NCBI GenBank assembly: GCA_964035545.1
Contig: CAXIUT010000153.1
Coordinates: 1-20,970, forward strand
Origin: Bugula neritina
Lineage: Eukaryota; Animalia; Bryozoa
DNA length: 20,970 nt
Direction: 5' to 3'
The position numbers were made by a program, and so were the translations under genes. Shown here in pieces: positions 1 to 20,970 of the stretch. Under the pieces are notes generated by a model, which searched no databases, was not told where the DNA came from, and saw only the letters and a program-made list of their open reading frames with translations. Position 1 is the first letter of the stretch; each line of letters opens with the position of its first letter.

Positions 1-319
1 CACTCAAATCAGAGTGATAGGAACCAATATGGTGTCAATGATGGGAGGGATCATGGTGACAGTTGCACCCATTATTATTGACGTTTGTATTACTGGAGGG
101 TTTCCTATTATGATTATTTTTGCTATTTTATCAGGAGTCAGTGGATTTTTATCATCAAGATTGCCTGAAACTTTTGGGTTAATTCCTCCTGATGAGATTA
201 AATAGTTGAAAGAAATTCATGAAGAAACAATAAAGAGGAAAAGTTTACTTGAAACAACAGAAGCTTTATACAAAAAAGATGAAGTCTCTGCAAGTGGTAG
301 TGAAAAAGCAGAAGAATGA
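1..319 (+). CDS. MFS transporter, SLC22/organic cation transporter-like, paralog 1 (5'-truncated)
   Basis: Frame from nt 2 reads TQIRVIG...RLPETFG...; it reads through TAG 203-205 (Glu) to TGA 317-319. The (P)TQxR and LPET motifs are typical of SLC22/Sugar_tr C-termini and match the three downstream copies. Confidence 0.85.
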
Positions 320-397
320 TATAATAGCTTAAATTCTTATCATATCTAACACTAAATATCTTTAAAATATCTAACACTCAATACCTTACAACAACTA

Positions 398-1989
398 ATG
401 AGCAACGAATAACAGTTAATTTAATCCCAAGATAAAGAATCGCCAACTTACTTTTCCTTGATGTAGAAGGTGGGAACAGCTGGAAGGTACCAACTGCTAA
501 CAATGATGGTTTGGATATCGACATTGTATATCGGTGGAGGTCTGATGATGATACTCCCTTCCTATTTTACCAAGCCGACTACAACTGCCCATCTGAATAC
601 CTGATAGAAACAGTTGTCTCAAATACATCTGTTCATTGAATCCATCTGATCGTACCCAATACATTCCTTCATAAACTTTTGACTCTTTGGTCAACACTGT
701 TCGAGATTACCGTTGTTAGACTTCTTAGTTGGATTTAGTGATAGCTATAATGTATGGAGGGTGTTTATTGGGTATATTTGTTTTGTCTGTGATAGGAGAT
801 GTCTATGGTCGTTGGACTTTGATGCTGGTTAATAAGATATTGATACTGATTGGAGTGGTTGTGACTGGGTTGAGTGGTGGTCTATGGGTGGGTGGACTAG
901 GGATGTTTTGTTTGTATGGTAGGATGTAAAAATAGTATCAATTTGGTTTATATCTATATTCCCTAAACCATATAGCCTGTTAAAGCTAAGCAGGCTATGA
1001 GCATAGTTATGATATTTTTTGCTGTAGGAGCACTAATGAACGTTCCTTGGTTCTATTCATAAAAGATTATAAAACTATTTTATTTGTCTGTTTTGCAATA
1101 CCTGAAGCAATATCAATTATCATTTTGATTCTTTATATCAAAGATGTGCCTATTAGTTTGGTAAATAACTACAGTGAGGTGCTATCATCTTTAAAACATA
1201 TATCTAAAATAAACAAGAAAGAGTTTAATTTATCTCTTGTTTAGTTAACAAAAACAATCTAAAAAATAAAATAAAATCAAAGAGAAAATAAAATAGCTAA
1301 CAATAATCAAGATTTACGATAATGGATTTATTTCGTTATCGATCTCTTCTAAAAATAACAACAATATTCATTTTACTATAATTCACAATAAGTCCTTTCA
1401 TATAATAGTCCAACTCTAATGCTAAACCAATTTTAATTCAACATATTTATCAATGACATCTTCGTACAAATAGCCCAAATCATCGCATATACGTCTAGTA
1501 TATTTATTACTCCTAAATTTTTAAGGAGAAATTTATCCTTTATATATTTCTCTACTTGTTTCGTCAGCTCTTTTATTTTGATTTTTGTGTGGTAGCAAAA
1601 CAAATCAAATGATGAGGATGTAGCAATGGTGTTGTAGTTTTGTTTTTTGTTATTTTGATACAGTTGACCATTACTTTGCAGTTTCCTGTCTTCTATATCT
1701 TTTTGAATTAACTGCTGCCTACGCAAGTTAGAGTTATTGGAATTGGACTGGTAGAGACCTTTGGATCTTTAATTTTGATGCTTATTCAGCCTTTGATCAG
1801 TGTTTGTATTAAAAATTAGTTTCCTATCATGGCTATATTTGCATCGCTTGCTGCTGTTAGTATTTTTTGGGGTGTATATGTTGCCTTTAGACTTATGGAC
1901 AGGCTCCTGCTTAGATAATATAAGAACTAAAATGTAAAAGTGGTATTAAATCTATCTAATTATAAAAGCTTAAAAGACCTTAAATATGA
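398..1989 (+). CDS. MFS transporter, SLC22-like, paralog 2 (many 1-nt frameshifts; sequencing error or pseudogene)
   Basis: ATG 398; VGTAGRYQ N-terminal motif, Cys-containing first loop, GDVYGR loop motif, NELLPTQVR, LP-ETYG; TGA 1987-1989. Roughly 8-10 single-base indels are needed to keep alignment with the paralogs. Confidence 0.8.
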
Positions 1990-2024
1990 TATTGTTTATA
2001 ATTTCCTCAATAATTTTGAACTTT

Positions 2025-3730
2025 ATGAACAATAAATATTCAAATTTAGAAAATTCATAAAAAAATAATACAAAAAAATGATATAGTAAAAGATGATTCC
2101 TAAATAGCCTCCAGATAAAAATCATATTTCCAGCTGATGTAGAGAGTGTGGCACGATGGGCAGGTACCAAATTCTAATGTTATTTCTTTGGATGTTGACT
2201 CTCTACATCGCGGGTGGACTCATGATGATGACTCCTTTTCTATTCTTCTAAGACGACTACGACTGCAAAGGTCTCTATCCTGACAGCAAAGCCTGTCTCG
2301 AGTATGTTTGCACCTTAACCGATGACGAGAAGCAGCAATATATTCCTGTTAAAAGTTTCCACTCGCTTGTTAATAAGTTTGGCGACTACCGCTGCGAGGC
2401 TTCTGAGATAGATTTGATTATCACTTGATGTATAGCGGTGGACTTCTGGGCATGTTCGTGGTATCCCTTTCTGGGAGACGTTTTTGGCAGAAAAACTTTG
2501 ATTCTATCAAACATGATTATTATTCTAATGGGAGTGCTTGTTACCATTTTCAGTGTTAATGTGTGGATGGGCGGTGCAGGTATGTTTCTATGCATGGTTG
2601 GGACTAAAACTTCAAGTAATCTTTGCTATATCTATGTGATATAAAGTATCTAATAGAAATATTCTAAAAAGTTTATTAGTATTATTATGAGTTTCTTTGC
2701 AATTGGAGCCTTATTTTCTGTTTTTTGGTTCTATCTTATTTTAAAACTTCTAAACTGTGATTAAAACTGTGATTATTTATTGCTATGGAATACCTCTTGT
2801 TATTGCCATAATCATACTAACTTTTTTTATTACTGAAACACCAATTTGTCTTGTTAGAAAATTATCTTCTTAAAAGGTCTTATAAAAATTATAATTTATC
2901 GCTAAATTCAACAAAAAGTAAGATTTCGATTTAACTCTTTAATAACTTGATAAAATAATCGATGATTTAAATCAAAATGACTTTAAAAAAGGATAAAAAA
3001 GAAAGAAATTCAGTATATTAGACTTATTTAGATATAAATCTATAAGAAATATCACTCTAATGGTAGTTTTACTAGATAGTACAATTAGTTTATAATACTT
3101 CAGTCCTACTCTTATGTTGGACCAGTTCAATTTCAACATATTTATCAATGGAATCGTCGTATAGTCGTCTCAAGTGTTTCCCTACTTGTTTAGCACTATT
3201 TTGATATCAAGATTTTAGAGAAAGAAGTTATCGTACATAAATTTTACCACATGTTTTGTCAGTTCCTTCGTGCTTGTTTTTATCTGGGACCAAAACAAAT
3301 CAGAAACAACTGAAATCGGCAACAGTATCGCCGTTCTTATCTGTGTCTTCTTTATACAAGTTACCATGACGATCGAGTTCGCTGTCTTCTACGTTCACAT
3401 CAACGAACTGTATCCGACTCAGGTCAGAGTCATTGGAGTCGGTCTTGTCGCATCTTTCGGAGCTCTTGGTCCTTGACACTCACTCAGCAAATTATTAGCG
3501 TTTGTATCTAGAGTGGGTTTCCTATTATGATCATCTTTACTGTTCTGGCTGCCTTGAGCTTGGTCTGTACCTATCGACTTCCTTAAACCTTTGGAAAGCT
3601 ACCAGCTTAGGTGATATAGTAGTTAAAGAATAAAGACAACTTGCAAAAGCACTAAGATGTTTCGTAAGAAGAAAAAATCAACTTAACTCCACAAAAATCA
3701 AAAGAAGAGAACAATGAATTCTTATCCTGA
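2025..3730 (+). CDS. MFS transporter, SLC22-like, paralog 3 (several frameshifts)
   Basis: GTMGRYQ, GDVFGRK, DLFRYKS, NELYPTQVR, LPETFG (E=TAA 3584); TGA 3728-3730. The start is tentative (ATG 2025 requires an indel in the A-run near 2075). Confidence 0.82.
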
Positions 3731-3780
3731 TAACTATTTGTTCATTTGCTTAATATTAATTTAAATAGCTGACTAACTCG

Positions 3781-5392
3781 ATGCGGGATGAAGAGAAACT
3801 GGTTGAAACGGCCAAGTAAAACGAATAGTCATAAGCTGGTAATATATATTTCTTTTGATGTAGAGGGTAGGAGCAAAGGGTCGATATCAGAACTTTTTAT
3901 TTGCTTTGTATTCTCTTTTTTTTTATGCTTTAGGAGGGATTCAGTTGATGACACCTTTTTTATTTTACCAGGACCCTTATAATTGCAACGATATGTTTCC
4001 TGATTAGAAAAGTTGTACTGAGTATGTCTGTGCAAAAGCATCTCAATAGGAGTTTATTCCTTAAAAAACATTTTTATCTTTGGTTAATAACTTTGGAAAT
4101 TACCGTTGTTAGAGTTAGATGTAGGAAGTAACTTTGATAATAACTGTAATGTATTCAGGTGCTTTTTTGGGTGCTTTTAGTATGGCTATTTTGGGTGATA
4201 TAGTTGGTAGAAAATCTTTGATTTTGCTTAATATCATCTTGATGATAACTGGTATCTCTGTATGTATTTGGAGTAGCAGTGTGTGGATGGGAGGTTTGGG
4301 ACTTTTGTTATGCAATTTTGCAGGTAAAAGTGGAACCAATTTAGTCTATGTGTTCATAACTGAAGTCGTATAAACCTAAAAAAGACAAATATTTTTGGTA
4401 AATATTCAAAACTTTTATTCAGTAGGAGCACTACTAAATGTACTTTGGTTCTATCTCATTGGAAACTATCGATACATTCTTATTTATTGTTATGTCATAC
4501 CAATGGCTATCGTTTTGGTTGCTTCTATTCTATTTGTAAAAGACTCTCCCATTTGCTTGGTCAACAAGTATTCACCTTAGTAAGCCTTTTAGGCGTTTAA
4601 ATTTATAGCTGAATTCAATCGCAGACAATAGCTCTAGTTGACAGTGGATGATATTTATGAGTTAAGACTAAAAATAAAGAAGCATGAGGGAAAGGAGAGC
4701 AAGGATAAGAAGGTTTTCAATATATTGGATTTATTCAGGTATGCTTCTTTAAGAAAAATTATTCTAATATCAATATTATTAGAAATAACAGTAATTTATA
4801 ATTTTTTACTCCTTCCATTATGCTCAGCCAATTTAATTTCAATATCTTCATCAATGGAATGGCTGTTTAGTCCTCCCAAATCATCTCTCAACTAGTCTGT
4901 ATGTATCTTATCACAAGAGTTAAAAGAAAAGTATTTGCTTATATTTCATTATCTGTGACTTGCGTTAGTTCTATCATACTAGTTTTTATTTGGGATCAAA
5001 ATAAAACAGAAACAACTGATATTGGTAACGGAGTGGCTGTACTTTTCTTTATCTTTCTGGTATCCTTTATGATGACTGCAGAATTTATGTTTTTTTATGT
5101 TTATATCAATTAGTTGCTACCCACTCAAGTTAGAGTTATTGGTTTGACCTTTTGTGCTACTTTTGGTGGGTTGACTCTTGCTTTTGCTTCTCAGATAGTT
5201 AATCTTTGTGTTAAGAATGATTTTCCTATTATGGTTGTCTTTGCAGCTATGGCGGGTATTAGTATTTTTGCTTCTTATTTTCTACCTTAGACATTGGGAG
5301 CGATGCCGGTAGAAATAATTGAAGAATTAATTGTAAATTAACCATAAGAATCAAGAATCAATTAGTCTCCTAAATCAAATAAAAACATGTGA
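3781..5392 (+). CDS. MFS transporter, SLC22-like, paralog 4 (several frameshifts)
   Basis: ATG 3781; VGAKGRYQ, GDIVGRK, DLFRYAS, NELLPTQVR (E=TAG 5111), LPETLG (E=TAG 5288); TGA 5390-5392. Confidence 0.82.
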
Positions 5393-5442
5393 TAAATAAT
5401 TAAAGAAGTTTTTAAGATTGAATATTATTGTTTTAATCATTA

Positions 5443-5643
5443 GAATAATTAAAAGTATCTTTTGCCTGATTGATTTCAAGATGTCTTCTTTGTTTTTCAA
5501 AAGATGATGAATAATTAAAAGTATCCTTTACATGATAAATTTCAAGATGTCTTCTTTGCTTTTCAAAAGATGATGAATAATTAAAAGTGTCTTTTGCCTG
5601 ATTGATTTCAAGATGTTTTCTTGTATGATATTTAAAAGATGAT
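5443..5643. repeat. 66-bp tandem repeat, about 3 copies
   Basis: Unit GAATAATTAAAAGTATCTTTTGCCTGATTGATTTCAAGATGTCTTCTTTGTTTTTCAAAAGATGAT starts at 5443, 5509 and 5575; the third copy diverges at its end. Confidence 0.9.
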
Positions 5644-5669
5644 TGAGATATTAATTTGATAATATTATT

Positions 5670-6427
5670 ATGGGAAATCAGCTGTGTCCAAGTAATGACA
5701 AGGAAATCATTCAAAATTTTGCATAAATATAAAAAGGATAAAAAACTTATTAAAGTCTTTTCAAGTATTGCCTTTCTCCCTAAGATGACTCATATAAAAA
5801 TCCACAAGATATGATTCATGATCTACATTAAAATAAAGAAAACATATAGTTAATTATAGATCCTTCCAACAAAAAGAAAATCATCTATTTGGTTAGATAA
5901 TAAAGTTAAGATTCTAAAATAGATTAAAAAAGTATTTCTAGGGACAGTTCAGGAAGTTTATTTGAAAAAACTAAACAAAATAGAGCAGTAGTAGTAGATC
6001 TAGTCCTTCAAGATGGATGGAAGTATTCAGGACCAATAGTTGATGGTTTGCCTGAAGGGTAAGGTTAATAATATGGACCAAATGGAGATTACTTTATTGG
6101 TCATTTTAAGAAAGGATAAAAAAGTGGATTAGGTCTTTACAATTTTTATAATTCAGCTCGATATCGAGGTTAATTCCGTCAGAATTTAATGTGGGGGTAG
6201 GAATTTTTGACTTTCAGAATGGAGATCGATTTGAAGGTCATTTTGCTAATAACGTTCGCGAAGGGAAAGGTCGTTACATTCCAAGACAGCCAAATATCGA
6301 TGGATTACTATACTTTTAGGGCTACTATAGCAAAGATGTGAAAGATGGATAAGGAGTGATGGTGTACGAGGATAGACAGGTACGTGGGATGTGGAAAGAT
6401 GGGGTATATGACTACGATATAAAATGA
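5670..6427 (+). CDS. MORN-repeat protein with a putative N-terminal acylation motif (MGNQLC)
   Basis: Repeats YSGPIVDGLPEGEG, YFIGHFKKGEKSGLG, YRGEFRQNLMWGEG, FEGHFANNVREGKG, FEGYYSKDVKDGEG; TGA 6425-6427. One 1-nt deletion near 6200. Confidence 0.85.
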
Positions 6428-6486
6428 TTTGAATTTTTTGAAGTCGTAAATAATTAGATTCAGTAAACTAATAAAAGAGTTTTCTG

Positions 6487-7770
6487 ATGATATCTGGCAG
6501 ACAACTTAATTCTAGAATTATGTTTTTAAGCCATATATTAATAAATGAACTTTCAAAACATGAGGTCGTCTTTGGATATATCTCAAAGTATAGGCAATCT
6601 CTTTCTTTTTTGTCTTCTGATTTTCTTCGTCATTCTTTGACTAACAAGCATCTTTTCAATGATTTTCAAGAAGATACTCGTTGCATGGCATTAAGGCCTC
6701 GTAGCAGTCTAGCTGTTAACTTGACTGATTTGCTTTAAAAGATAACACAGGATTAAAAATAACATGAGAAACTTCAAGTTAATCAACTGAAATCAACTTT
6801 GAATTCACTTTAGGAAAAGATCAAATATGCAAAAACGAATTTTACATGTTAAAAATCAAAGATCAGAGAAGAAAAAGCAACACATATATTTTAAGGTTTT
6901 GATTGTAATATGAAAAAAAGTAACAGATGTGAAGATCAAAGTACTCTTGCTGAAAGTATTAACGTGGTAAAAAATGAACAGCGTATTATTGATTCTTCTT
7001 TGGGTAAAATAAAAACATATTACTTGAGACTTCTCTAATCAGCTCTTTAGGGATCAAATCAAAGAGCAAACCAGCATCTTCATCTTTCCCTTAAAATACT
7101 TAAAAATGCTTATAAAATAAACTCTCCATCTTACGTAGAACTTTAATAGAAAAAAGTTAATTTACCTCGACATAAATCAGATCAAAACAAAAAAACAATA
7201 GTAATTGATATCGATTAAACTCTTCTTCATTGTTCCTAAGATCCAAATAAACCTTATGACTTCAATGTGTCAATATAAATATAAGATGGAACAATAGTTT
7301 AGGCTTATATAGCTTTGAGACCTCATGTGATAAGTTTTCTTAAGAAAATGGCCAAACATTTTGAAATAATAGCTTTTACAGCTAGTCACTAGTCATATGC
7401 AGATGTTGTTCTTGATTAGATTGATCCCAACAGATAATTTATCAGACATCGACTCTACCGGAAACATTGCATTGAAATACACTAAAAATTATATGCAAAA
7501 GATTTGAGGATACTGAATAGATAGCTTTCATAAATGGTGCTTATTGACAATGCTCCTTACAGCTACATTTTCCAACTTTAAAATGCCATACCCATCTTGC
7601 CTTATCTAGAGGGTGAAGATCAAGAATTGATGCATTTGGAGAAGTATCTTTAAGAGATGAGAAAATATGAGGATGTACGAGAGGTTAATAAGAGAATATT
7701 CAAATTGCATCAGTATAGTTTGTTTGGAGATGTGGAGGAATTGGTAAAAGAACTTTATGGAAAAAAATGA
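6487..7770 (+). CDS. FCP1/SCP-type (NIF, HAD superfamily) CTD small phosphatase-like protein
   Basis: Uninterrupted 427-aa ORF in table 30. Motifs IVIDIDETLLH (DxDxT; E=TAA 7216), LRPHV, FEIIAFTAS, YAD, RLYRKHC, KDLR, LIDN, NAIPI. The start could instead be ATG 6520. Confidence 0.92.
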
Positions 7771-8107
7771 TTACTACTTTATTTTATCTTTTTTCACTCA
7801 TCAATTGCTACTGCTTTTAACAATATTAATAGTGGATAATCTTAATAAAAGGATGTGAAGATATTTGACAATATCCATGATGATTAAATATTAGAAGTAA
7901 AGATGGGTATTATTTGAAGCGATGACTTGAAATACTACAATTAATGCAGTAGTTCGAGATATCTCCAGTTGTTGTTGGCATGGCCATTTCGATAACAGCC
8001 ATCTAAGACTGCCTCTCTTTAACATGCCTAATTATTATATCTTACCTCTTATTAAACTACACTCAATACTACCATAATTAAATAGCCATAATTAAAATCA
8101 ACTCGTA

Positions 8108-8431
8108 TCATTTATCTTTATTATTTCTATTCATAGTTCGAATAATAGTTCTAAAGATGCCACATTTTTATTTATAGCAATTTAGAAGATCATCTCTTTT
8201 CTATTTGATGCAAAGGTCGTAAATTTATTTGGAAATGTATTATAAGTTTTGTTGTTTGTTTGCTTCATCAAGGGTGACGTATTTCCCCATTCGATAGCAA
8301 CTAGCAGGAAATTAAGGATCAAAATCGTTGTCTTTTGGAATCATTACTAAAGGAGTTCTCTTTATCTAGTTACCGTCTTAAATGTTTACATCCCCTCTTT
8401 AACTGAAAAAGTCCTATTTATGTTAATTCAT
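8108..8431 (-). CDS. hypothetical protein (107 aa)
   Basis: ATG-to-TGA ORF in table 30 (MNEHKEDFFSERGDVNIEDG...) with AT-rich upstream sequence; no motif recognised. Confidence 0.45.
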
Positions 8432-8460
8432 AACAAATAATCTTTAAAAATTATTATTAA

Positions 8461-8976
8461 TCATAGATAATAACACTCACCACTTAGGAAAGTATTATTT
8501 ATCTACTGATGGCAAACCGATGCTCTGGTTAAAATCTCCTTGCCACTCTCTTCTACCTGTCCATTTATTAGGATACTAGCGGTCAAAGTCTCGGTATTTA
8601 TGAGGGAAATAGGGACTCTCATCTAGATCTTTTTGGAAATGCTGTTCAAACCTGATTGCGATAGTACTGTGCTCTTACTATGAACTTCATTGTCAGTGAT
8701 TTTTCCTGAAACTTTATGTTCCCGTTTTGATGGTGACAGCCCAGGAGTGCTTGTTTCAAGAGTTTGAGGATTATAGAAGGAAGTCTTTAGTGGAAATTTA
8801 TCATTTTCAAGTGGCTAGACATGTCTTTGAATAGGTTCATACCAGCTAATAATTCTTTTTTGCTTGTCTCCGAACCGAGCGATTTATTCTTGATGTCTAT
8901 GTCTGATCAGAGACTTATCATAGTACCTGATAGTGGGTTTAGCTCCAGGGATGTCATCTGTATACAGCGCTCTCAT
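8461..8976 (-). CDS. hypothetical protein (about 160-171 aa)
   Basis: ATG 8976 (MRALYTDDIPGAKP...) is open to TGA 8461. An optional 20-nt intron at 8557-8576 would move the stop to 8477. Confidence 0.55.
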
Positions 8977-9039
8977 GAATAAAATAATTATCAAAAATTA
9001 ATTATAGATGAAAATGTGATAAAAATAATGAAAATACAA

Positions 9040-10346
9040 TCATGGAAAAAGTGACCTGAAATCTAAATATTGACTATCTATCTCTTAGTATCTCTCGTTA
9101 TTTGAAATCATCAACTAAAATGCATCTAATCTTCCCTCATCATCTTATCCTAGATCATCTTATTGCCTCCTGAATTGGTCGAAATGAGATCGATTCTCAG
9201 GAATTATTTCGTCTTATGAGTTGGAAAAGAGGTCTACTTGGGTTTTATAACTGAAGTTTAGTGATTTAGAGAACTATTATTCGTTGATCAGGCTCTTTTA
9301 GGAAAAGAAAGGAACTTGTTCTTTGAATTTTTAGGGATTTTAGCTTGCGTTTTGAAGATATAAAGAAGAAACAGAAGGAAGATGTTAGTTGATGATTTTA
9401 GTTCTTTTAGGTTTGGTGATTTCTTATTTTAGTTCTTTTTTTTAATTTTAAAGATGTTTTTGAAGATTAGTAGTTTGTTAAATTAGAGTTTAGTTGAAGA
9501 AATTTAATTTTTTTTATAGTTTATTTTTGATTTTATTGAATTTATCAATATTTTATTTTTTGAAGACAAAACTATTTTTATTGAGTTCTCTCCAATACAA
9601 GCAATAAGCTAAATAACTAAATGATTACACTATATTTTAATCAGTCCTTCAATAGAAATAGATCTTTCATGCATATATTCAAACAATTGATAATCTTTTA
9701 TCCTTAGTTCTCTTATTTTATTTGCCCCAACAACCTTTTTCATTTATTTGTTGATAATTTTGACAACTCCATTGATAATGCTATGGACATTGGCTGTATT
9801 TCTTAATATGAGACTAAGTACACTATATTTAAAAGAATGGAAATTTGCCGAGGAGTTTTTCCTTGGTAAAAATATTAAAGAATCTTTTTTTTAATTTCTA
9901 TCTTATTATATTTTATCTAATTCATCTACTCTTTAGCTATTTCATGAGAATATCTAAGTCCAGTGATAGATACTTTATCTTGTACTCTTTTGTAGTTCTT
10001 CTGGAACCCAAAGCATGCATTTTTAGACATACAGGAGTCCATTAGTCTTTGTTGGAGGGACTTATTTCTGAAACTATCTGAATTAACGACTATATTTCCT
10101 ACTTTTATTTATTTATACTTATTTTGGCCATCTCTTAGCAGATTTGACTTGTCTTGTACTTCCTTTATTCTTACTTAAAAAATTCATCACAAATTTATTT
10201 ATTTATTATAACTGCTATTATGTATGCCAACACTAATAGTGCCATCCAACTTCATAGGTAGCCATACAAACTTGATAGACATTGATGATTGACCATTTTT
10301 TATGTGTGTATTGTTCTTAATTATGCCTGATGACAAAGATTGCCAT
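9040..10346 (-). CDS. Myb/SANT-like domain protein (408 aa, four 20-nt introns)
   Basis: After splicing 10099-10118, 9954-9973, 9802-9821 and 9609-9628 the frame is continuous to TGA 9040. It contains RWPKEEIESLIQIV...EWTPVC...RRTTKEYKIKY, a degenerate Myb repeat. The start could instead be ATG 10187. Confidence 0.7.
9609..9628 (-). other. 20-nt intron
   Basis: GTAATCATTTAGTTATTTAG; removal restores the frame to TGA 9040. Confidence 0.7.
9802..9821 (-). other. 20-nt intron
   Basis: GTACTTAGTCTCATATTAAG; removal restores the frame. Confidence 0.7.
9954..9973 (-). other. 20-nt intron
   Basis: GTATCTATCACTGGACTTAG; lies at the end of the Myb-like repeat. Confidence 0.75.
10099..10118 (-). other. 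20-nt intron
   Basis: GTATAAATAAATAAAAGTAG; removal creates the Myb motif WPKE|E. Confidence 0.8.
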
Positions 10347-10910
10347 CTGTTGATGTAATAGTTAATAACATAAAAATGATTTTTATGAGTTTTAAAGGGT
10401 ATAAATGACAAATTGAGTCAATTTTGGACTATATTAGTTGATTTGATATTAGTTTGTGGGTAGATATTGAGTATTGCGGGAGTTATAATGTTTTTATCTA
10501 TGCTACAAAATATAATTGTTTTCTTAAAATGTAAATAAAATCAATTAAAACCTCACAAATATGATAGTTTGATCTCCAATACCAATCTTTATCAAACCTA
10601 TATCTTTATAGCTATATTTTCTATAATATTTTTATCTAATCTTTTACCCCACAAACAATACAAAACAAAAACAGTTCCAATGATGATTTCCAAGTGATAA
10701 AGTATGATATCAGGTTGTTATTTAACTTTAACTTTATTTTTAAAATAAGATTAAAAGTTGCTCCCTATGATTATAAAAGATTATTCTTAACAAATTTTAT
10801 AAAAGAGCAATAATTTATAAAAAAAATAGTATATTCCTAGATAGATATTCATTATTATTTCATTATTTATTCAATAATACAATAAAATACTCTTATTTAA
10901 TATTTATCAT

Positions 10911-12896
10911 TCATATTTATCTTTGTTCTGGTCTGCAATAATCTAGCTATAAAAATTTAAATATCTCCTCTTCTGTTTTCATCAAAGGAATATCTCCTCC
11001 TTTGTAGATCTTTTTTATCCCGTTTCGTTATTTCTTCTTTAGACCGTGATCTGACAGTAACAAACCTTTGTTGTGTGCTACCATACGCATTTGTCTGTTG
11101 AATAGGTCACTACCTGTGAAGTACATCATTGCGAAGGCGTACTGGTTGACAGGATAATGTTTTATGTCTATTCTGTGGTGTTGTCCTTAGAAGTAGCAGA
11201 CTCCCATGTATGCGGAATTGTTTCTTCCATCGAATTTGCGAGGATGAGATAGACTTTATGTGATAAACTTTTTTTTTTATAACTAAAATACCAAATTTTG
11301 AAGTAATTTTGGCTAAATTGAACTATCATGACGGCATATTAGAATGTCAATGTCACCGCAAGTTGGTTTTTTACGACGATATGAACCAACTACCTAGACA
11401 TGATGAGTTTTGTTGGTGAGAACTAGTCTGTAAAATATTTATTTAAAACATTAGAAGATACGGGTAACTTTATCTCTTGGTATTCTTTTAGAAAACTACT
11501 AGAAATATTTAAGACCGACTGATATATTTTTAGAAATGAGATCTGGTCTTTTTTTGAGGTCATCTACTGTTTTGATTCCCATTTAATAGAACTATTGTGC
11601 TTTTTTGTATCCTATGCCCCATACTTTTTATAGCTATTTGCATACGCTAATATCACCTTTTTTTTGCATTCTTTGAACTTTACTTAACATTCCATTTTTT
11701 AGTATTTATCTTATTTTTTATACCATCCCTTTGGACACTCCTTCTATCTACTTAACATCATCGGCATCAGTGATTTCTTTATTATGTCTTCGAATGGCTC
11801 CAATGGTTCTGATGTATAGATGTGATCTCACATCGTTTTGTCTCTTGTATATCTATTGCATTTAATTTAATTTTTGACAAATGAAGTCATTACGTTTGAA
11901 ATAATGACTTTGTAAATTTTTAGGTGGGGCAAACCATATCATCTTCCGGTCTGATTTTGGCTACCAAGGAACCAAAGGGTCAGCTTAGATTGATTCACCC
12001 AATCTGCTATCAGACAGTACTGTCTTCATATTGTATTTTGATGGGTTTTATTTGATTGAGATCTATTGTTATACATTTGTTTTCTATTATTTATATTATT
12101 ATTATTCGATATTTTTATATATGATTTATTATTCTTATTTATTTTGCAGGAATTGAGGTTATACTTTATGATATCTATTGTTATTATTATTTTTATATTG
12201 ATTTTAAGGATCGATATATGAGCTGCTTTCCTAAATATCTTAAAACTAATCCTAGTCAAATGCTTTGATTCCTTTTTGACTAAGTTACTCATAGCTGGCT
12301 TCTTATGAAATCAATTTAATGATTTAATCGATTTAGGGTTTATTTTATAATTTGGGTCTTATATGTTTATCATTCAACTCTTAAGCCTACAACTTCTATT
12401 TGGCAACTGATAAAGAATTGATCTAATTGTGATAGTTTTAACTATTATCATACAATATATAATCTTGAATTCTCATCCTTTTCAACCTTTTTAAACTATC
12501 GACAATGAATTGATAACTTATTATCAACTAATACCTCAAATATTCAGATATTCTGGTTCTAATAGCATTGATATCAGATTTTTATGAAATAATGACTAGT
12601 TTAGCATATTATTGATTCATTTTTTATGTAAATTAAATGATCTTGCCTCCCTGCATAAATATGCCACGAACCAAATCAGTTACTTCTTAGTTTTTTGGAT
12701 CATTTTATTCGTCTAAAAGAGGCAAACATAGAGATAGATGCTGGAATATGCCGCTATTGGATATTTAGTTATTTTTTGATAGATCTTTTACCTTTCGAAT
12801 TATGGGAATTTTTGGTTCAGGTTATGCTTGTTTTTGCTTTATAGGAATAGCTGCTTTTAGTGTTTTTATGTGTTCTAGCAAGTTCATGTGATTCAT
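10911..12896 (-). CDS. POLL: X-family DNA polymerase, Pol lambda-like (BRCT + 8-kDa lyase domain + polymerase)
   Basis: Uninterrupted 661-aa ORF. BRCT-like GIFQHL..GGKII..FIVDSL; lyase HhH GVSKGMVEKIREIL; VWGIG; GLKYFEEFSKRIPR; GSYRRK..GDIDIL; YMGVC; RIDI; YFTGSDLFNRQMR; LSDHGL; TEEEIF..Y..PEQR. Confidence 0.92.
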
Positions 12897-13010
12897 TTGT
12901 TTGTATGTTTATAATTGAAGCGGGTGCTATGTTTAAAATCAATTCTCATTTTTTTGGAGTACTCAAAATATCAAATTATTAATTATCAATTTAAATAAGA
13001 CTGTATTTAA

Positions 13011-13073
13011 CAACTTATCACCCTTTAATATCAACTTATCACCCTTTAATATCAACTTATCACCCTTTAATAT
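13011..13073. repeat. 21-bp perfect tandem repeat x3
   Basis: CAACTTATCACCCTTTAATAT at 13011, 13032 and 13053, upstream of the PolX start. Confidence 0.92.
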
Positions 13074-13147
13074 CAAAAACCCTTATTATATATAGTAATG
13101 ATAGTAGGAATAGATGAATTGACTTGAATGAATCAAAATGTAGTAAA

Positions 13148-13894
13148 TCAGCTTTTTTTCAATAAGCATACTTTGTCTTTTTGCAATCTTTTTCTCAAAA
13201 ATCCATCTTCCAGCTCCTAGATAAATATCTACACGTATTTCATAAACTTTCCCTTATCTTTTATTTTCTTTCCCTCAATGTAGGCATTTAATTTTCCTTA
13301 TTGAATTTGTTTTAAGGTTTAGGCAGCCAAATACTTTCTGGCCTAGGTGTAGAGATGCTATCCACTATTTTATACTATTTTTATAAATCCGTATTATTTT
13401 AGTTCTTTTTCTATTATTTTATGCTAGTTTCTTTCTCCAAGTAAATAGTGTAATACTTTTTTGGTTGTTACGTGTGATTGCTTGAATGTTTTCCACAGTT
13501 GGCTTGCCACCTTCTCATGCTCTTATGCCTTTTTATCTCCTGAGTGAATCACTATTGAATTTTTAAGACAAAGAGTCAAGTGCTTTTGGAAGTTATGGAA
13601 AGAGGAAGAATTAAATCTACCTTGGACTGATAGCTAATACTCATCATCAAGCGACAATGAACTGGAAGATAGTAAACTTTAAACTGGAGAGGTTGGTTTT
13701 GGTTGTTAGTTTTTGATGAGAGGTTATTGTTTGATGGGTTAGTTTTGGATGAGGAATTGATCGAGGTATTTATTGGAGTCACCGCGTTGCAGGTATGGTA
13801 GTTCTTGTGGGAGTTCTTACTCTTTGAGTGAGTCTTGAACAACTTGGGTGTGATTTTACTAGAAGAAGATGCCTATTCCTTCTGGTTGTGACAT
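13148..13894 (-). CDS. hypothetical protein (248 aa)
   Basis: Uninterrupted ATG-to-TGA ORF in table 30 (MSQPEGIGIFFEENHTQVV...); no motif recognised. Confidence 0.7.
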
Positions 13895-14269
13895 ACTAAA
13901 TTAATTATACCACTGAAATAACTTTTAAACATTTACACTAACTTATTTTATCAATTCTGATTAGAATTATTCTACCAGTGACTATACAATTAAATCTAAT
14001 ATAAAAGAAATCATAGATGAAAAAGAGTCATAAAGGCAAGTAATGACTTAATATTTACTATGACATCATATAAAAAATAATCAAATAATTCTTTTTGATT
14101 TTAAGATCAAATGGTCAGAATATGTCAGTAATCATTCTTTTGCTAAAAGTATAAGTCATTGATATATTGATGCAATTGACTCCATATTTCTAGTATTAAT
14201 AATTCTCATATAAATAGCTAATCAGAGAATATTAAGATTGATCATATCAAATATTTAATTATAATTAAG

Positions 14270-15819
14270 ATGCCCCTCAACAACCAAAAGGAGTACATAT
14301 AAATCCCCCTATCAATCGAAGACACACCTCTCCTTCTCTTCTAAAAACTAAACCCGCCTAAACACCCATCAGATCCCATCGAACTCGGGCTCCACCTTAT
14401 AACCAACATCGACTAAGCCATCAGGTCATCAGACAACACCTCCTTATTGAACATTTACTTCAACTAGTTCTAAATAGCCAATTCTAGTAATTTTGTCTAG
14501 AAAGATTGGCCGGCAGTGCATGAAATATAGAGTATGATTCGTTGAATATTTAGTGCAATATGAGTAGAAAGATTTCGGAGCTAAAGTTCAGACGATTTAT
14601 AATGAGCTAAGGTTGAGGAATCAGTTTTAGAGAAGTAGAAAAGGTGCAGAGAAGTAGTTTGTGGATGTAACAGATTATAGTTGGTAAAACTACTAGTCTA
14701 TTTTGGAAAGATAGTGCAAATAAATATCGTTTCCACCTCTTGTCATCTGGGTACCTACTATCATATCAAGAATATATTTTAAAATTTCCTTTATCAGTTC
14801 AGTAAATACCATTAAACCAAACCTTCCTTCACATTGTAGGTCGATAACTCTATTTTCAATATCGAACGCACTAAAGAGTTATTGTCACAGTTGATACTAT
14901 TGATTCCAGCAGAGGCAACTAAAAATCCAAGTAGCAAGTAGACTTCTGGATATTTTGCCTTACTTGCTTCAGCATCGATTGAACTCTACCAAGGTAACTA
15001 CAAATAAGCCCTATCTCTCCTTTCTAGGATCTCTTTGCAACATCTTGCCGCATATTCTAGAGCAATAGGCGCACTTCTTCATTTATTTTTGCTTACCAGC
15101 TATAGCTACTTCATGCTCGAGCAATACAAATAGTCAGCTAGGGTAGTAGAGATGATATTGCTATTTTACCAAAAGAACAAAAAATATTTTAGCGGAGTGA
15201 AAGGCTAGCAAGCAACTATTAAACAGTTTGAGCAGTTGGCCAGTTTACTATGTCTGGATTATATATTTTTATAGTAAAAACCTAAATCAATAATTCTCTA
15301 GTTATTCAAAACAGTATTAATAAAGTTAAAAGACAAGCAGAACAAGTAAAAACTATATGACAAATATATAAAACTCAAACAAAAAGACCAGCACTCTCTT
15401 AACAAGCTATTCCTTTACATATCTTTGCCTTCCTTTAATGGAGTACTTTATTATCTATTTAGATCGATCAGATAAGCGAGATGGTGGGCATTCGCTTTAC
15501 TTCTGTGCATAATTTGACACTAAACACTGTTTTGCAGCACTATACTCAGATATCGATTGACAAGTTGTCAAAGATGTTGAAGGTGGGGCAGTAGGAAGTG
15601 ATGCACCAGTTGGAGTCGTTTAATAATGTATCTGCTGGTTCTGGGCCATGGGATGTGACTATTATGCAGCCTTTGCTTAGTCAAACCAGAAAAGTGCAGG
15701 TGTCAGTGGTAGATGGAGTTGTCCAGTTGGATACAGAATAAATACTAGATAGCAATAACTAGTGGGAACAGTATCATAAAGAAATTGCATGGCTTGTCTA
15801 AAAAGTCGATGCTGTCTGA
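14270..15819 (+). CDS. EIF3L: eukaryotic translation initiation factor 3 subunit L (divergent; three introns)
   Basis: After splicing 14532-14553, 14751-14770 and 15443-15462, the motifs are colinear with eIF3L: IYNELRLR, SWENY, PLVIW|NIFENFLYQF (cf. WLWDIIDEFIYQF), GYFALL..GNYKEAL, YFMLEQY, IKQFEQL, HYTQISIDKL; TGA 15817-15819. Confidence 0.8.
14532..14553 (+). other. 22-nt intron
   Basis: GTATGATTCGTTGAATATTTAG; removal restores the eIF3L frame. Confidence 0.75.
14751..14770 (+). other. 20-nt intron
   Basis: GTACCTACTATCATATCAAG; removal joins the conserved eIF3L motif W|NIFENF. Confidence 0.88.
15443..15462 (+). other. 20-nt intron
   Basis: GTACTTTATTATCTATTTAG; removal restores the frame. 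Confidence 0.82.
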
Positions 15820-15935
15820 TATATATAACTCAACTGTTGTATCAAATGTTTTTATAGTAGTGATAATAGTAGTGATTTAATAGTAGTTATACTAGTAATG
15901 ATAATTAAATAATGCAAATAGCAATAATAATAACA

Positions 15936-17816
15936 TCATAGTAGCAATTAGTGAGCCAGATCCATGGGAGATATTCTATATGTACCAAAAACCATCGACG
16001 CTAATAACAAATAAAAAGTTTTACTTCTTCTGGGATAACTCCAAAGCAACTATCTCTGCAAGGCATTATTTTCTAAAAACCCATTTTCTTACAACCACTT
16101 CCACACAACATCTGACACCAACTACCTTGTTTAGCTTTAGATAGTAATTTTTAGTCTATCTTCTAGTTAGTCTTTGAAATAATCTTAATCTTTGATTTTG
16201 AAGAAATCTTCGACAAAAGAACGAAGTATTTGATAGCTATCTGCCTGATTGACTAGTATTTTTAGATATTTAGAGGTTAGTATTTGTAGTTATGCAAAAT
16301 GTTTCCATTCGATAGTGATTTATTAGTGATTGCCTGGTATTTTACTATCGATTACAGTCTATATAATTTCTTTTAATTTGATCCGATGAAAATCACTATC
16401 GACCAACCCTTTCAATACCCCATGATATTTCATCAATACTCCACAAGTTATTTCTTACTCACCAATATTTTTGTTTATCTTTTTGCTCAATTGGTTGTAA
16501 TATAAAAACTATTTTTTTATTGATTATTTTATTTGTTTTTGTTACAGGTTGAAATGGAAGTAATAAAGAAGTGGTGGATTTGATCGACTTGTAGGTTGCT
16601 AGACATTTTACTAACGCCAAATGGACTATCTTGATTTTGAACGAATGGGTGGGTCGATGTTTGGAGTTAGAATGGTTGTGAGGTTGTTTTTGCTTCTTTA
16701 TTTTTTTAGTTATAGTAATTCAAAGGCTTTACCTAGTGATTTCCTTTTATTCTATTCGTGTTGTTGGATATTGCTATGATAGTTAATGCTATTTTAATCG
16801 TATTTACCAGGCACAACTTATTTTCTAAAATATTTTCTCAACTTGCCCACAAAGCCCTTCTTCTCCATCTAATCATCATACTACCCCACTAGACTGATAT
16901 AGTTTTAGTATATCTAGTTGACATTGAAGGAAGAATCTACCACATATAGCTTTTTAGTATTAAAAGGAATATCAACCATATCTTTGACTATTTATCCATT
17001 CGATAGCAGCAGTGTTAGATTGGTGAGGGGTTGATGTATTTTGGATGATATTAGTTTATTGATTTGTAGGATTAGATTTTATAGCAAACTCGTTCTGATG
17101 GTTTTAGTTGGTATGCAGTATGCTTTTATCAGTGTGAAGAGATATTTTAGCCAATATTTACTTCTGCTAATATAATTTTGCATCAATTATATCAGTTAAT
17201 TAGTATTGTTTATCTACCAAAATTAGTCAGGCCAGTTATTCCTATCGACAAAACTATCAAGCATTCCACTCTTGACCAAAGGCTTAAGATATTTGAGGAT
17301 GATGCTATTGAGTTAATGATTTTTATGTGATATTTTTTTATTGAAGTATAATTTGAAGTATGATTATAAACTTATACTAATAGTTGCTTCTTTTATATCT
17401 TTATAGTCCCTTATCAAATGCAATCCTACTATTTATACCTGACCATACCTGAACGAACACTATTTTTTATTTTATACTGTCTAGTGCTGTGATATGCTGT
17501 CTATTTTCTTTGATTCGCTTAGTTAGTTGTGATGTTAGAGAGGGGAGTCGATCGTTCTGTACATTTTTATCAACCTTGTGGAGTTGTCGCTTAGTTTGCG
17601 ACTGCTGACTATCGATGATGGGCTTATTTGGGATAGTTTATGTTCTGTTTTCATGCTCATTAATCTCTTTCTATTAGTTATGTGGCTATCTGGGTAAGAT
17701 ATAGTCGAGTGAGTTGTTTTGGTTTACTGGAATTGTTGGGTAGGGAGAGTGCGACCTGCAAGCGGTGAGATAAAATGTTTTTGTTTTGATTTTGTTATCA
17801 AAGGAAGTAAGTTCAT
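15936..17816 (-). CDS. hypothetical protein (626 aa)
   Basis: 1881-nt uninterrupted ORF from ATG 17816 to TGA 15936 in table 30, with protein-like composition. It is absent from the supplied ORF track. Confidence 0.8.
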
Positions 17817-17861
17817 AAAATTATTTATCAGCTAAGTTATATTATTACAAAACAACCAAAT

Positions 17862-17927
17862 ATGATATTCTTAATCAAAATAATGATATTATTTAATCAA
17901 AATAATGACATTCTTTAAATCATAATA
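17862..17927. repeat. degenerate 21-23 bp tandem repeat x3
   Basis: ATGATATTCTTAATCAAAATA / ATGATATTATTTAATCAAAATA / ATGACATTCTTTAAATCATAATA. Confidence 0.75.
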
Positions 17928-17969
17928 ATAAGGATGATATTTTACTACTTAATAATAAAAATAACAAAT

Positions 17970-19036
17970 TCACCAGCCTTTATTATGTTTATAAGCTATC
18001 AATATTTTTAACTTATTTCTGGCAGATGATTCCTAATGCACTTTGCTTTTAATTTTTTAAAGCGACCTCTTAATCGTTGCTGCTTTTTATCCATTTTTAT
18101 TTTGAAACTAAATAAAGGCCAACTAATTCATTTTCTTTTATATCAGCATCAATATTTTATAAACCTGTTTAATTAAATCCATTTCCTATATTAGCTATCC
18201 TTCTTTGACTTTTTAAACTTCCATTTCTTGTTTTATTTTTTTAATTTACCTTTATCGATTCATATTGATTTAGTTGGTTCTATAGATTTGTTTAGCTTTT
18301 CTTCCTTACTCTCTGTACATTCTTAACAAAAACAATTTGGCTAGCATGTCTGCCCTTCTCTAGATTTATACATTGGATGGAAATCTTCTAGTACTAAATT
18401 ATATCTTATTCTAGTCCATGAATTACAAATCATATCTTCTTATTTTCTTCTATTGCCTATGTTATATCCTAAATACTACAACACCATCTTCAGATCGTTG
18501 ACGTCGTATTTGATCTCTTTGAAATTGATGTATTTTTGGTCGGGAATAAATGACTAGTTTTGACCTATTTTCTATTTTTTATGCTTGTTGCGAATGTAGT
18601 TTATGCTTTTGAAAACGGGTTCTCCTGAAAGAGATTTTTCGTTGTAACAATTTTATATCAAATATGAAAAATCATATTCGCCTATTGTCACTGTACTCTT
18701 CTACTTATCCTTCTTATCCTATCTGTAGTGCTTGTATGTCTTTATATTTATTGCGCTGATATATGTCGACTATTATTGCAAACTAAATGATCGATTATTA
18801 TACAGTTTTTCGAGGAGATCTTGGCGATTGAGCAGTTAGTTGACGTTATGTTTGAGGGAGTCGTATAGAAATTGGTATTGCTATTTTTGGATGCGAGAGA
18901 TAGGTAGTTTGCCGAATATCTAGTATACTGTCTAAAACTAACCCAGTTATCGCATCTACCTATACGATTTCATCACCATCTATTCTACTAGCTAGTCTTT
19001 CTGGGTTATTGATTACTTTATCTCTTACTTTATCAT
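17970..19036 (-). CDS. hypothetical charged/coiled-coil protein (348 aa, one 20-nt intron)
   Basis: ATG 19036; two long open frames are joined by removing GTATTTAGGATATAACATAG (18457-18476); TGA 17970. Confidence 0.7.
18457..18476 (-). other. 20-nt intron
   Basis: GTATTTAGGATATAACATAG; removal joins two open frames. Confidence 0.65.
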
Positions 19037-19280
19037 GTTAATCTTATATTATGAATTCGATCATTTATCTGATTCAATGAATATATTAACAATAGTTTAA
19101 ATATGGTCTTTCAATTCCTATTTAAAACTAAGTAGTTGAGTAGTAGTCAATGATGAACTGCTACAACTCTTTACTCTTCTTTCCTAAAACATATTATAGA
19201 CATTTAACCTTTGATGATGATTTTGAGTAATGATATAAATGGATTGATTTAAATCCTGTTGATAATAATTACTTCACCAA

Positions 19281-19776
19281 ATGGCTTAATAAGGATCTCA
19301 ATATTTCTTCGGATACATCGGCGTTGCATCAGCTCTCGTCTTTGCCAACCTCGGAGCTGCCTACGGGTCAGCTAAAGCAGGAGTAGGTATCTGCTCCATG
19401 GGCGTCCTTAAACCAGAACTCATCATGAAATCTGTAGTACCCGTCGTCATGGCCGGTATTCTGGGTATCTATGGTATGATCGTTGCCGTCATCATCGTCC
19501 AAAGAAGTATCCTATCTTCTATTCAGTTGGCACTGATTACACAGACAAGTCAGCCTACGCCCATTTGGCTTCAGGACTCTGCTGTGGGTTCAGTTCTCTG
19601 GTACAAATTTAACTAGGTAGGCGGCTGGACTGGCTATCGGGATAGTGGGAGACGCAGGAGTTAGAGCAAATGCTCAACAAGACAAGATCTTTGTGGGAAT
19701 GATTTTGATTCTTATCTTCGGAGAGGCTTTAGCTTTGTACGGATTGATCGTCTCCCTTATCCTCACATCGCAGTGA
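19281..19776 (+). CDS. ATP6V0C: V-type H+-ATPase 16-kDa proteolipid subunit c (151 aa, two 20-nt introns)
   Basis: [59 protein letters not shown]|[44 protein letters not shown]; introns 19507-19526 and 19601-19620; TGA 19774-19776. Confidence 0.97.
19507..19526 (+). other. 20-nt intron
   Basis: GTATCCTATCTTCTATTCAG; required for the conserved V-ATPase c frame. Confidence 0.93.
19601..19620 (+). other. 20-nt intron
   Basis: GTACAAATTTAACTAGGTAG; removal joins the conserved SSL|AAG exactly. Confidence 0.95.
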
Positions 19777-19927
19777 TTCGTAGTGATAGATTCACCCATA
19801 AATTTAACCACCCATTCCTATCATTACATACATAGACATCATAGACATAAATACTAACAAGAAACTACTAACAAGACAACGACTATGAACAAGATAACTA
19901 CTATTAAGAAGATAACCATTTAAACAA

Positions 19928-20842
19928 TCAAAATCGACTTCTTCTCGTCTGTTTTCCATAGATTTTGAATGCTTCTTGAGTCTTTTCCAGTGCTTTCTCT
20001 AATCTTTTCTTCAAACTATCTTCTCTGGCTTCTGGCTAGTTTAGTTTATAACTAGTGGTCATTGAACAGTTAAAAGATGATTTGTGTATTTTGGGTCTAA
20101 CTTATTCTGTCCCAATGACTGAATGTCTAGTCTTTTCAGAAGTAATTGATTACTAAGATTGTTGAGAAAGTATTTAGTTTTTAGGTTGTCCTTTCTCTTC
20201 TGGACTGATAGAACGACCTCGACTTGATCCTCCTTTGCTTCTTCTATTTTTTCTTCTATTCAGCCGACTTTAAATTTCCGTTATTTTTTTATCCAACCTT
20301 GTGGAATAGTCTGACAACTAGGAAGATGCTCTTTTATTGACACTGATATTTTCCATGAGTTTATCGATTTGATTTTGGTATTATGCTTTTAGTTGGTATC
20401 TTTAGTGTTCGGGTACTATTTAAAATCTACAATTAAGAGCCAATTTAGGTTAATATTAACTACTAATTCCAATATCTTCTATTTTGATGGCTATTTTAAT
20501 GCCTAGCTATGCCAATTTGCATCCCAGCTAATTTAATTTTTATTTGATCATATTAACAAACTGATTCTCATTCAATTTGGCATGTCTGCTTAGATTGTCT
20601 TAGATGTACTAGTAATCAATAACGAATCCTTTGCCTTTCTTTTATACTATTCTCTACATCTATATTGTATAGGGCAGTTAGTGTGAAATTAAGAAGTTAA
20701 TGTTAGCTTGGACTTTATGGTAATCTTATTGGTCGTGGGTGGGTATTTGGCGACGGATTGTTACTTTTTGTATTTGGTGTTTTGGACCTTAGAATGGGTA
20801 GGGGTGGCTGCTGGTTATTTCGATTATGTATTGTTTTGGCAT
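19928..20842 (-). CDS. hypothetical protein (304 aa), telomere-adjacent
   Basis: Uninterrupted ORF from ATG 20842 to TGA 19928 in table 30. Confidence 0.75.
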
Positions 20843-20889: not shown

Positions 20890-20970
20890 GGGGTTGGGGT
20901 TGGGGTTGGGGTTGGGGTTGGGGTTGGGGTTGGGGTTGGGGTTGGGGTTGGGGTTGGGGTTGGGGTTGGG
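20890..20970 (+). repeat. telomere (TTGGGG)n, macronuclear chromosome end
   Basis: 13 GGGGTT units plus GGG run to the window end, with the G-rich strand pointing 5'->3' toward the terminus. This is the Tetrahymena-type T2G4 repeat. Confidence 0.98.

Follow-up and report, generated by a model that had tools for sequence, protein, structure and literature searches.

The stretch analysed here, 20,970 nucleotides of contig CAXIUT010000153.1 in the Bugula neritina genome assembly GCA_964035545.1 (the whole stretch is called the window below), is very probably a macronuclear chromosome end, with its telomere, from a ciliate whose nuclear code is that of the peritrichs (NCBI translation table 30), in which UAA and UAG specify glutamate (Glu) and UGA is the only stop. 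The original prediction for this DNA had named the same code, and named it correctly: its three assignments (TAA as Glu, TAG as Glu and TGA as stop) were reached in four independent ways, from codon pairs with orthologs, from a profile of homologs of the PolX gene, from paralogs within the window and from polymorphisms between strains. The code itself is already known, from work of 2003 and 2016, and what the window adds is one more organism that uses it.

The 3′ end of the window consists of 13.5 copies of GGGGTT (20890..20970, forward strand), and these telomere repeats directly terminate a sequence with dense genes and short introns, as in a macronuclear chromosome. The opposite end falls within a gene, so that the chromosome is incomplete here. 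The window is AT-rich (~31% G+C) and holds about 15 genes per 21 kb. Read with the standard or bacterial code it looks almost gene-free, with only seven open reading frames (ORFs) of at least 75 amino acids, which matters greatly for annotation; with TGA as the sole stop, long frames are found on both strands.

Decoding of UAA and UAG

The decisive test used codon pairs between the window and related species. The closest fragment to the PolX gene of the window (10911..12938, reverse strand) was P0003, on the metagenome contig L001 (54% G+C), where the upstream part of the gene has in-frame TAG and TAA and the gene ends in TGA. Five further loci (L005-L009) came from a scan of Joint Genome Institute (JGI) metagenome contigs. 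Their collinearity with the window spans ~6580-16970, with a nucleotide identity of 65-71%, and over ~10 kb they share with it the gene order NIF, a gene of unknown function, PolX, a second gene of unknown function, an eIF3L-like gene and a long ORF. The six loci represent four species, the JGI loci accounting for three (37%, 23% and 29% G+C) and L001 for the fourth. The same codon usage is seen in a further relative, L020, and in all at least five related species, drawn from metagenomes and other sequencing runs and ranging from 23 to 54% G+C, use TAA and TAG (together TAR) as sense codons and TGA as stop. One of the relatives is part of GCA_041192925.1, an assembly made from the reads of a project on a parasitic copepod.

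After out-of-frame shadow matches had been filtered out, 5,783 aligned codon pairs were kept. The partners of TAA in the window (n = 246) were the Glu codons GAA and GAG (together GAR) in 60 cases, TAA in 41, TAG in 22, lysine (Lys) codons in 22, asparagine (Asn) in 13 and aspartate (Asp) in 12; those of TAG (n = 148) were Glu in 39, TAA in 33, Lys in 16, Asp in 14, TAG in 12 and glutamine (Gln) in 4. Glu thus makes up 60 of the 183 sense partners of TAA and 39 of the 103 sense partners of TAG. We then rated every candidate amino acid against the distribution of partners found, in these alignments, for the codons that normally encode it. Glu was the best assignment for both codons; for TAA it was followed by Gln (-70.5 nats relative to Glu), Asp (-83) and Lys (-152), and for TAG by Asp (-34), Gln (-44) and Lys (-94). 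As a control, this cross-species-calibrated likelihood test assigned 20 of 20 ordinary amino acids correctly. Among sites with a sense residue common to at least two relatives, Glu is the residue at 13 of 18 with TAA and at 7 of 12 with TAG, compared with 13 of 22 at which the window has a genuine GAA or GAG. The KI-x-E-IL column of PolX illustrates the pattern: it is a Glu position in 50 of 59 representative homologs, and the codon there is TAA in the window and GAR, TAA, TAA and TAG in four relatives.

The commonest ciliate reassignment is UAR = Gln (table 6), which is also inferred to be ancestral for the Oligohymenophorea (PMC10553269). We consider it extremely improbable for the window, given the deficits of Gln in the ortholog likelihoods and the 4 Gln partners among the 148 pairs of TAG, although one of our tests bears on it only loosely. 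For this test, a 52-amino-acid stop-free piece of PolX was used to gather 150 representative homologs, 108 of which aligned to the PolX domain of the window, and log-odds were added up column by column, as Codetta does. The 13 TAA columns gave Glu 5.8, Gln 1.9, Asp 0.1 and Lys -2.0, the 11 TAG columns gave Glu 6.8 and Asp 3.4, and both codons together gave Glu 12.6, Asp 3.5 and Gln 2.5. The profile decoded 29 of 31 sense codons correctly, but it is a poor discriminator of Glu and Gln when taken alone, because true CAA codons are mis-called as Glu. Two strain variants that change TAA to CAA, at 10436 and 10526, would also speak for Gln; they were set aside, since they lie in a frame without ortholog support in which variants are not concentrated at third positions. 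Applied to the window, table 6 would mistranslate roughly 7% of codons as Gln.

Four tandem MFS genes within the window (paralogs A to D) provided a further comparison, with 1,265 filtered codon pairs once out-of-frame shadow alignments had been removed. TAR pairs with 11 of 50 Glu codons, 11 of 112 Lys codons and 7 of 68 Asp codons, but with only 1 of 60 Gln codons. This sample rejects Gln and, taken by itself, does not separate Glu from Lys for TAA. Indeed, the commonest sense partner of TAA among these paralogs is Lys (8 pairs, versus 5 for Glu), as would be expected of the split code of Oligohymenophorea sp. PL0344, in which UAA is Lys, UAG is Glu and UGA is the only stop (PMC10553269). 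The small paralog sample misleads here: the tally is too small and noisy, and the ortholog data are therefore needed to decide between Glu and Lys. There, TAA aligns with Glu in 60 pairs and with Lys in 22, whereas true Lys codons align with Lys in ~60% of cases, and the likelihood for Lys is the worst of those given above. TAA and TAG moreover interchange freely, both between species (22 TAA-TAG and 33 TAG-TAA pairs) and between strains, and TAA is found at Glu positions both of PolX and of the paralog motifs NELYPT and LPET. We accordingly give the split code of PL0344 next to no credence. The motifs had been offered in the original prediction as an internal control, and they serve as one: the Glu column of N-E-LYPT is GAA in paralog C, TAA in B and TAG in D, while that of LP-E-T is GAA in A, TAA in C and TAG in D.

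Polymorphisms between strains gave an independent view of the same codons. Contigs from four public sequencing runs, ~1% diverged from the window, were aligned on 9040-14900. Among the 16 variants in PolX, nine are ordinary synonymous third-position changes, two are TAG to TAA (12231 and 12528), two are GAG to TAG (10967 and 10970, in KTEEEIF) and three are replacements, so that 13 of the 16 are silent under table 30. First-position G to T changes that the standard code would turn into nonsense mutations behave as silent in PolX. In a gene where the other changes are mostly silent, the GAG to TAG polymorphisms also argue against Gln.

Codon composition shows the same four codons sharing one role. 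The 2,564 ortholog-supported codons of the window include 109 TAA, 65 TAG, 65 GAA and 32 GAG. TAR and GAR together make up 9.9-12.3% of codons in all five species compared, and the split between them follows G+C: TAR and GAR account for 8.1% and 3.6% of codons in L008 (23% G+C), 7.2% and 5.1% in L009 (29%), 6.8% and 3.8% in the window, 3.7% and 6.7% in L005-L007 (37%), and 3.0% and 6.9% in L001 (54%). A single family of synonymous codons exposed to mutation pressure behaves in this way. The gain for biology is modest; beside one more organism with a known code, there is a small comparative point: TAR makes up from two thirds down to one third of Glu codons across the five species, tracking G+C, which is how a fully integrated four-codon Glu family is expected to look.

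The individual examples on which the original prediction had been built can be found almost without exception, and all eight of its numbered coordinates are correct. TAA stands at 7216 (IVIDID-TAA-TLLHCS), 3584 (RLP-TAA-TFG) and 1709 (LN-TAA-LLPTQV), and TAG at 5288 (FLP-TAG-TLG), 5111 (IN-TAG-LLPTQV) and 717 (YRC-TAG-TS), with GAA at 3405 (INELYPTQV) and GAG at 2396 (YRCEASE) in the corresponding columns of other copies. The PolX strings V-TAA-KIR-TAA-IL and KYF-TAG-TAG-F and the MORN string YRG-TAA-F are likewise present. Of the eight kinds of example cited, seven are there; the one that failed is a supposed Myb motif, WPK-E-E, at 10130, where the actual reading is WPK-TAA-V-TAA, in a frame that has no ortholog support and no Pfam match.

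Termination at UGA

Within this window, UGA is the sole terminator. Five genes could be checked against orthologs and all five end in TGA, as does every other recognisable gene, in keeping with what had been predicted. For PolX (6 loci), the gene ending at 13148 (3 loci), the eIF3L-like gene (2 loci) and the ORF ending at 15936 (1 locus), the alignment between the window and its relatives continues up to one of the two codons that directly precede TGA, and for NIF (2 loci) it extends to within 2-4 codons of it. The PolX frame runs for 675 codons free of TGA, a length with a chance of ~8e-7 at the TGA frequency of the window, while containing 42 TAA and 21 TAG codons.

Codes in which the same codon is read differently by context exist in ciliates (PMC4967479), and we therefore considered a reading in which UAR is mostly Glu but sometimes terminates, or in which UGA also encodes tryptophan (Trp) or selenocysteine, as in Condylostoma, the karyorelicts and Blastocrithidia. 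Such a code is very unlikely here. TAR codons are found one to three codons before the stops of window genes and do not terminate translation there (PEQR-TAA-I-TGA and AH-TAA-LLL-TGA), and all of the ortholog-checked genes stop at TGA instead. Trp is encoded by TGG, 20 times in the ortholog-supported codons of the window. These codons include no in-frame TGA, a zero to which the procedure contributes, since TGA was used to delimit the segments that were aligned.

The organism and its code among known systems

UAA = Glu was reportedly first shown in peritrichs (Vorticella and Opisthonecta) by Sanchez-Silva et al. in 2003 (cited in PMC4967479). The assignment of Glu has since been extended to both UAR codons for Campanella umbellaria and for Carchesium polypinum (PMC4967479; PMC10553269), and the peritrich code is inferred to have a single origin in the Peritrichia, from an ancestor that read UAR as Gln (PMC10553269). 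The window is the same as this code in every respect: TAA and TAG are Glu and TGA is the only stop. Among other oligohymenophoreans, the only variant with UAG = Glu is that of PL0344 (PMC10553269), with which the window shares this assignment, UGA as sole stop and an oligohymenophorean-type ciliate as its source, but from which it differs at UAA. The code of Tetrahymena, Paramecium and Oxytricha (table 6) has the same joint reassignment of UAR with UGA as sole stop, and differs in the amino acid. Outside the ciliates, the nuclear code of the trypanosomatid Blastocrithidia (table 31) reads UAR as Glu or stop and UGA as Trp; the window shares UAR as Glu, but UGA is a stop in every checked gene, Trp is TGG, and the sequence has a ciliate telomere and tiny introns.

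The organism is most likely a peritrich that was included, as epibiont or as contaminant, in the assembly of an animal genome, and the contig is probably a passenger in that assembly. The telomere repeat G4T2 is of the oligohymenophorean type, as in Tetrahymena; a search of the literature turned up no telomere repeats of peritrichs. The introns placed in the window, all of 20-22 nt, fit the narrow distributions of tiny intron lengths reported for the macronuclear genomes of the peritrichs Campanella sinica, Epistylis hentscheli and Vorticella campanula (PMC13685798). Alternatively, UAR could be Glu in a ciliate that, together with its five related environmental species, does not belong to the peritrichs, in which case the code would have originated a second time. 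Stop codons have been reassigned more than once among ciliates (PMC10553269, PMC11687900), and the code is common to at least five related environmental species over a wide range of G+C. We nevertheless regard a second origin as unlikely, since no group other than the Peritrichia is known to combine UAR = Glu with UGA as sole stop, and a single origin is inferred there (PMC10553269), since telomere and introns are of the kinds just described, and since the lifestyle of an epibiont suits a passenger in an animal assembly.

In the window, UAA and UAG are ordinary Glu codons beside GAA and GAG in a four-codon family, and this decoding is demonstrated by the data above. By analogy with other variant-code ciliates, they would be read by Glu-type tRNAs whose anticodons are UUA and CUA, and eRF1 would recognise only UGA. 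Suppressor tRNAs derived from tRNA-Glu have been described for UAG = Glu (PMC10553269).

A number of points weigh against the assignment of the window to a peritrich using table 30. To the Lys excess among the MFS paralogs and the partly built-in absence of in-frame TGA, we add that tRNA scans found no tRNA gene in the window or in 13 related loci, and that the window contains no eRF1 gene. The sample is one 21-kb window, which leaves room for other parts of the genome in which UGA or UAR occasionally has a second meaning. The attribution to peritrichs is an argument from parsimony; an Rfam scan found no rRNA genes in the window. Finally, 1-nt frame breaks in several genes may mean that part of the sequence is erroneous or pseudogenic. 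In practice, table 30 should be applied to all ciliate contigs in the assembly, and these should be kept apart from the contigs of the animal host.

Genes, introns and repeats of the window

Genes were recognised by homology, as a Viterbi codon-usage gene finder that allowed for tiny introns proved too weak (1,680 training codons). Pfam matches were obtained for the thumb, palm and fingers of PolX, for NIF, Sugar_tr/MFS, ATP-synt_C and MORN and, weakly, for Paf67 (eIF3L) and PCI. Exact look-ups of four window ORFs in public assemblies returned no match, where two of the four queries start with TTG, which gene callers write as M.

The four MFS/sugar-transporter paralogs lie in tandem on the forward strand. 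Paralog A is represented by its 3′ part (2..319), which was delimited by translation and paralog alignments; its LPET motif has GAA, and its TGA is at 317-319. Paralog B (452..1989) contains TAG 717 and TAA 1709 (N-TAA-LLPT), has several 1-nt frame breaks at homopolymers and ends in TGA. Paralog C (2150..3730), which matches Pfam Sugar_tr, carries GAG 2396, GAA 3405 (NELYPT) and TAA 3584 (LP-TAA-T) and ends in TGA, with frame breaks at ~2425, ~2470 and ~3474. Paralog D (3864..5392; Pfam Sugar_tr/MFS_1) has TAG 5111 (N-TAG-LLPT) and TAG 5288 (LP-TAG-T), followed by PVEIIEEL, ends in TGA and is broken once, at a T6 run (~4795).

Single-nucleotide frame breaks thus affect paralogs B, C and D (540-5400), and are also found in the gene at 8108-8991 (8625-8640). 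Most are apparent 1-nt deletions at short homopolymers, such as the T6 at ~4795, a T4 at ~905 and an A5/T5 at 8633, and in paralog C a -1/+1 pair ~50 nt apart flanks a segment that is conserved correctly. In L006, the ortholog of the gene at 8108-8991 is intact, and the PolX and 15936-17969 ORFs, of 2 kb each, have no breaks. The breaks may be assembly errors or may mark recent pseudogenes.

Downstream on the forward strand, a MORN-repeat gene (5930..6427; Pfam MORN, 1e-5) has TAA at the conserved Glu of Y-x-G-E (YRG-TAA-F) and ends in TGA. It is followed by a NIF/FCP-like phosphatase gene (6487..7770; Pfam NIF) with TAA 7216 in the DxD-x-T motif and its stop at 7768-7770. Within the NIF domain, 13 TAR codons are aligned with orthologs; those in L008 and L009 have 47% identity. 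A conserved gene of unknown function on the reverse strand (8108..8991) has 63-71% identity to its ortholog in L006/L007, a frame break at ~8633 (A5/T5) and a terminal TGA.

The PolX gene (Pol beta/lambda-like) has its stop at 10911-10913, and a piece of it matches solved structures of DNA polymerases lambda and beta in the PDB (8e-12 for Pol lambda). Between the end of a gene near 10251 and this stop, the region 10252-10910 has long TGA-free frames, none of which has ortholog support, and its strain variants are not enriched at third codon positions. It is probably a 5′ leader or an intergenic spacer and not the Myb gene that had been proposed. On the other side of PolX, a second conserved gene of unknown function (13148..14065, reverse strand) has orthologs in three relatives that end at the same TGA codon.

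Five introns were placed in the window, with GT..AG ends that are mostly GTA..TAG. Three of them divide an eIF3L/PCI-like gene of four exons (14225..15819, forward strand), which was recognised from weak Pfam Paf67/PCI matches and from orthologs and has its TGA at 15817-15819; they lie at 14532-14553 (22 nt), ~14654-14673 (20 nt) and 15443-15462 (20 nt). A long conserved ORF follows on the reverse strand (15936..17969), with 33 TAA and 15 TAG codons, and its L008 ortholog ends at the same TGA. The other two introns, at 19507-19526 and 19601-19620 and of 20 nt each, belong to the gene for the V-ATPase proteolipid subunit c (19281..19776, forward strand; Pfam ATP-synt_C, 5e-14), which begins MA-TAA-TAA-GS, ends in TGA and has a splice model that was scored against homologs. 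Relatives of this gene are very numerous in metagenomes. The same intron position is kept in many of them, and their mis-called ORFs accordingly read through it alike, with 82-87% identity there.

Between MFS paralog D and the MORN gene, the spacer contains about three tandem copies of a unit of ~85 nt (5400-5640), visible as recurring peptide strings in all three translated frames.

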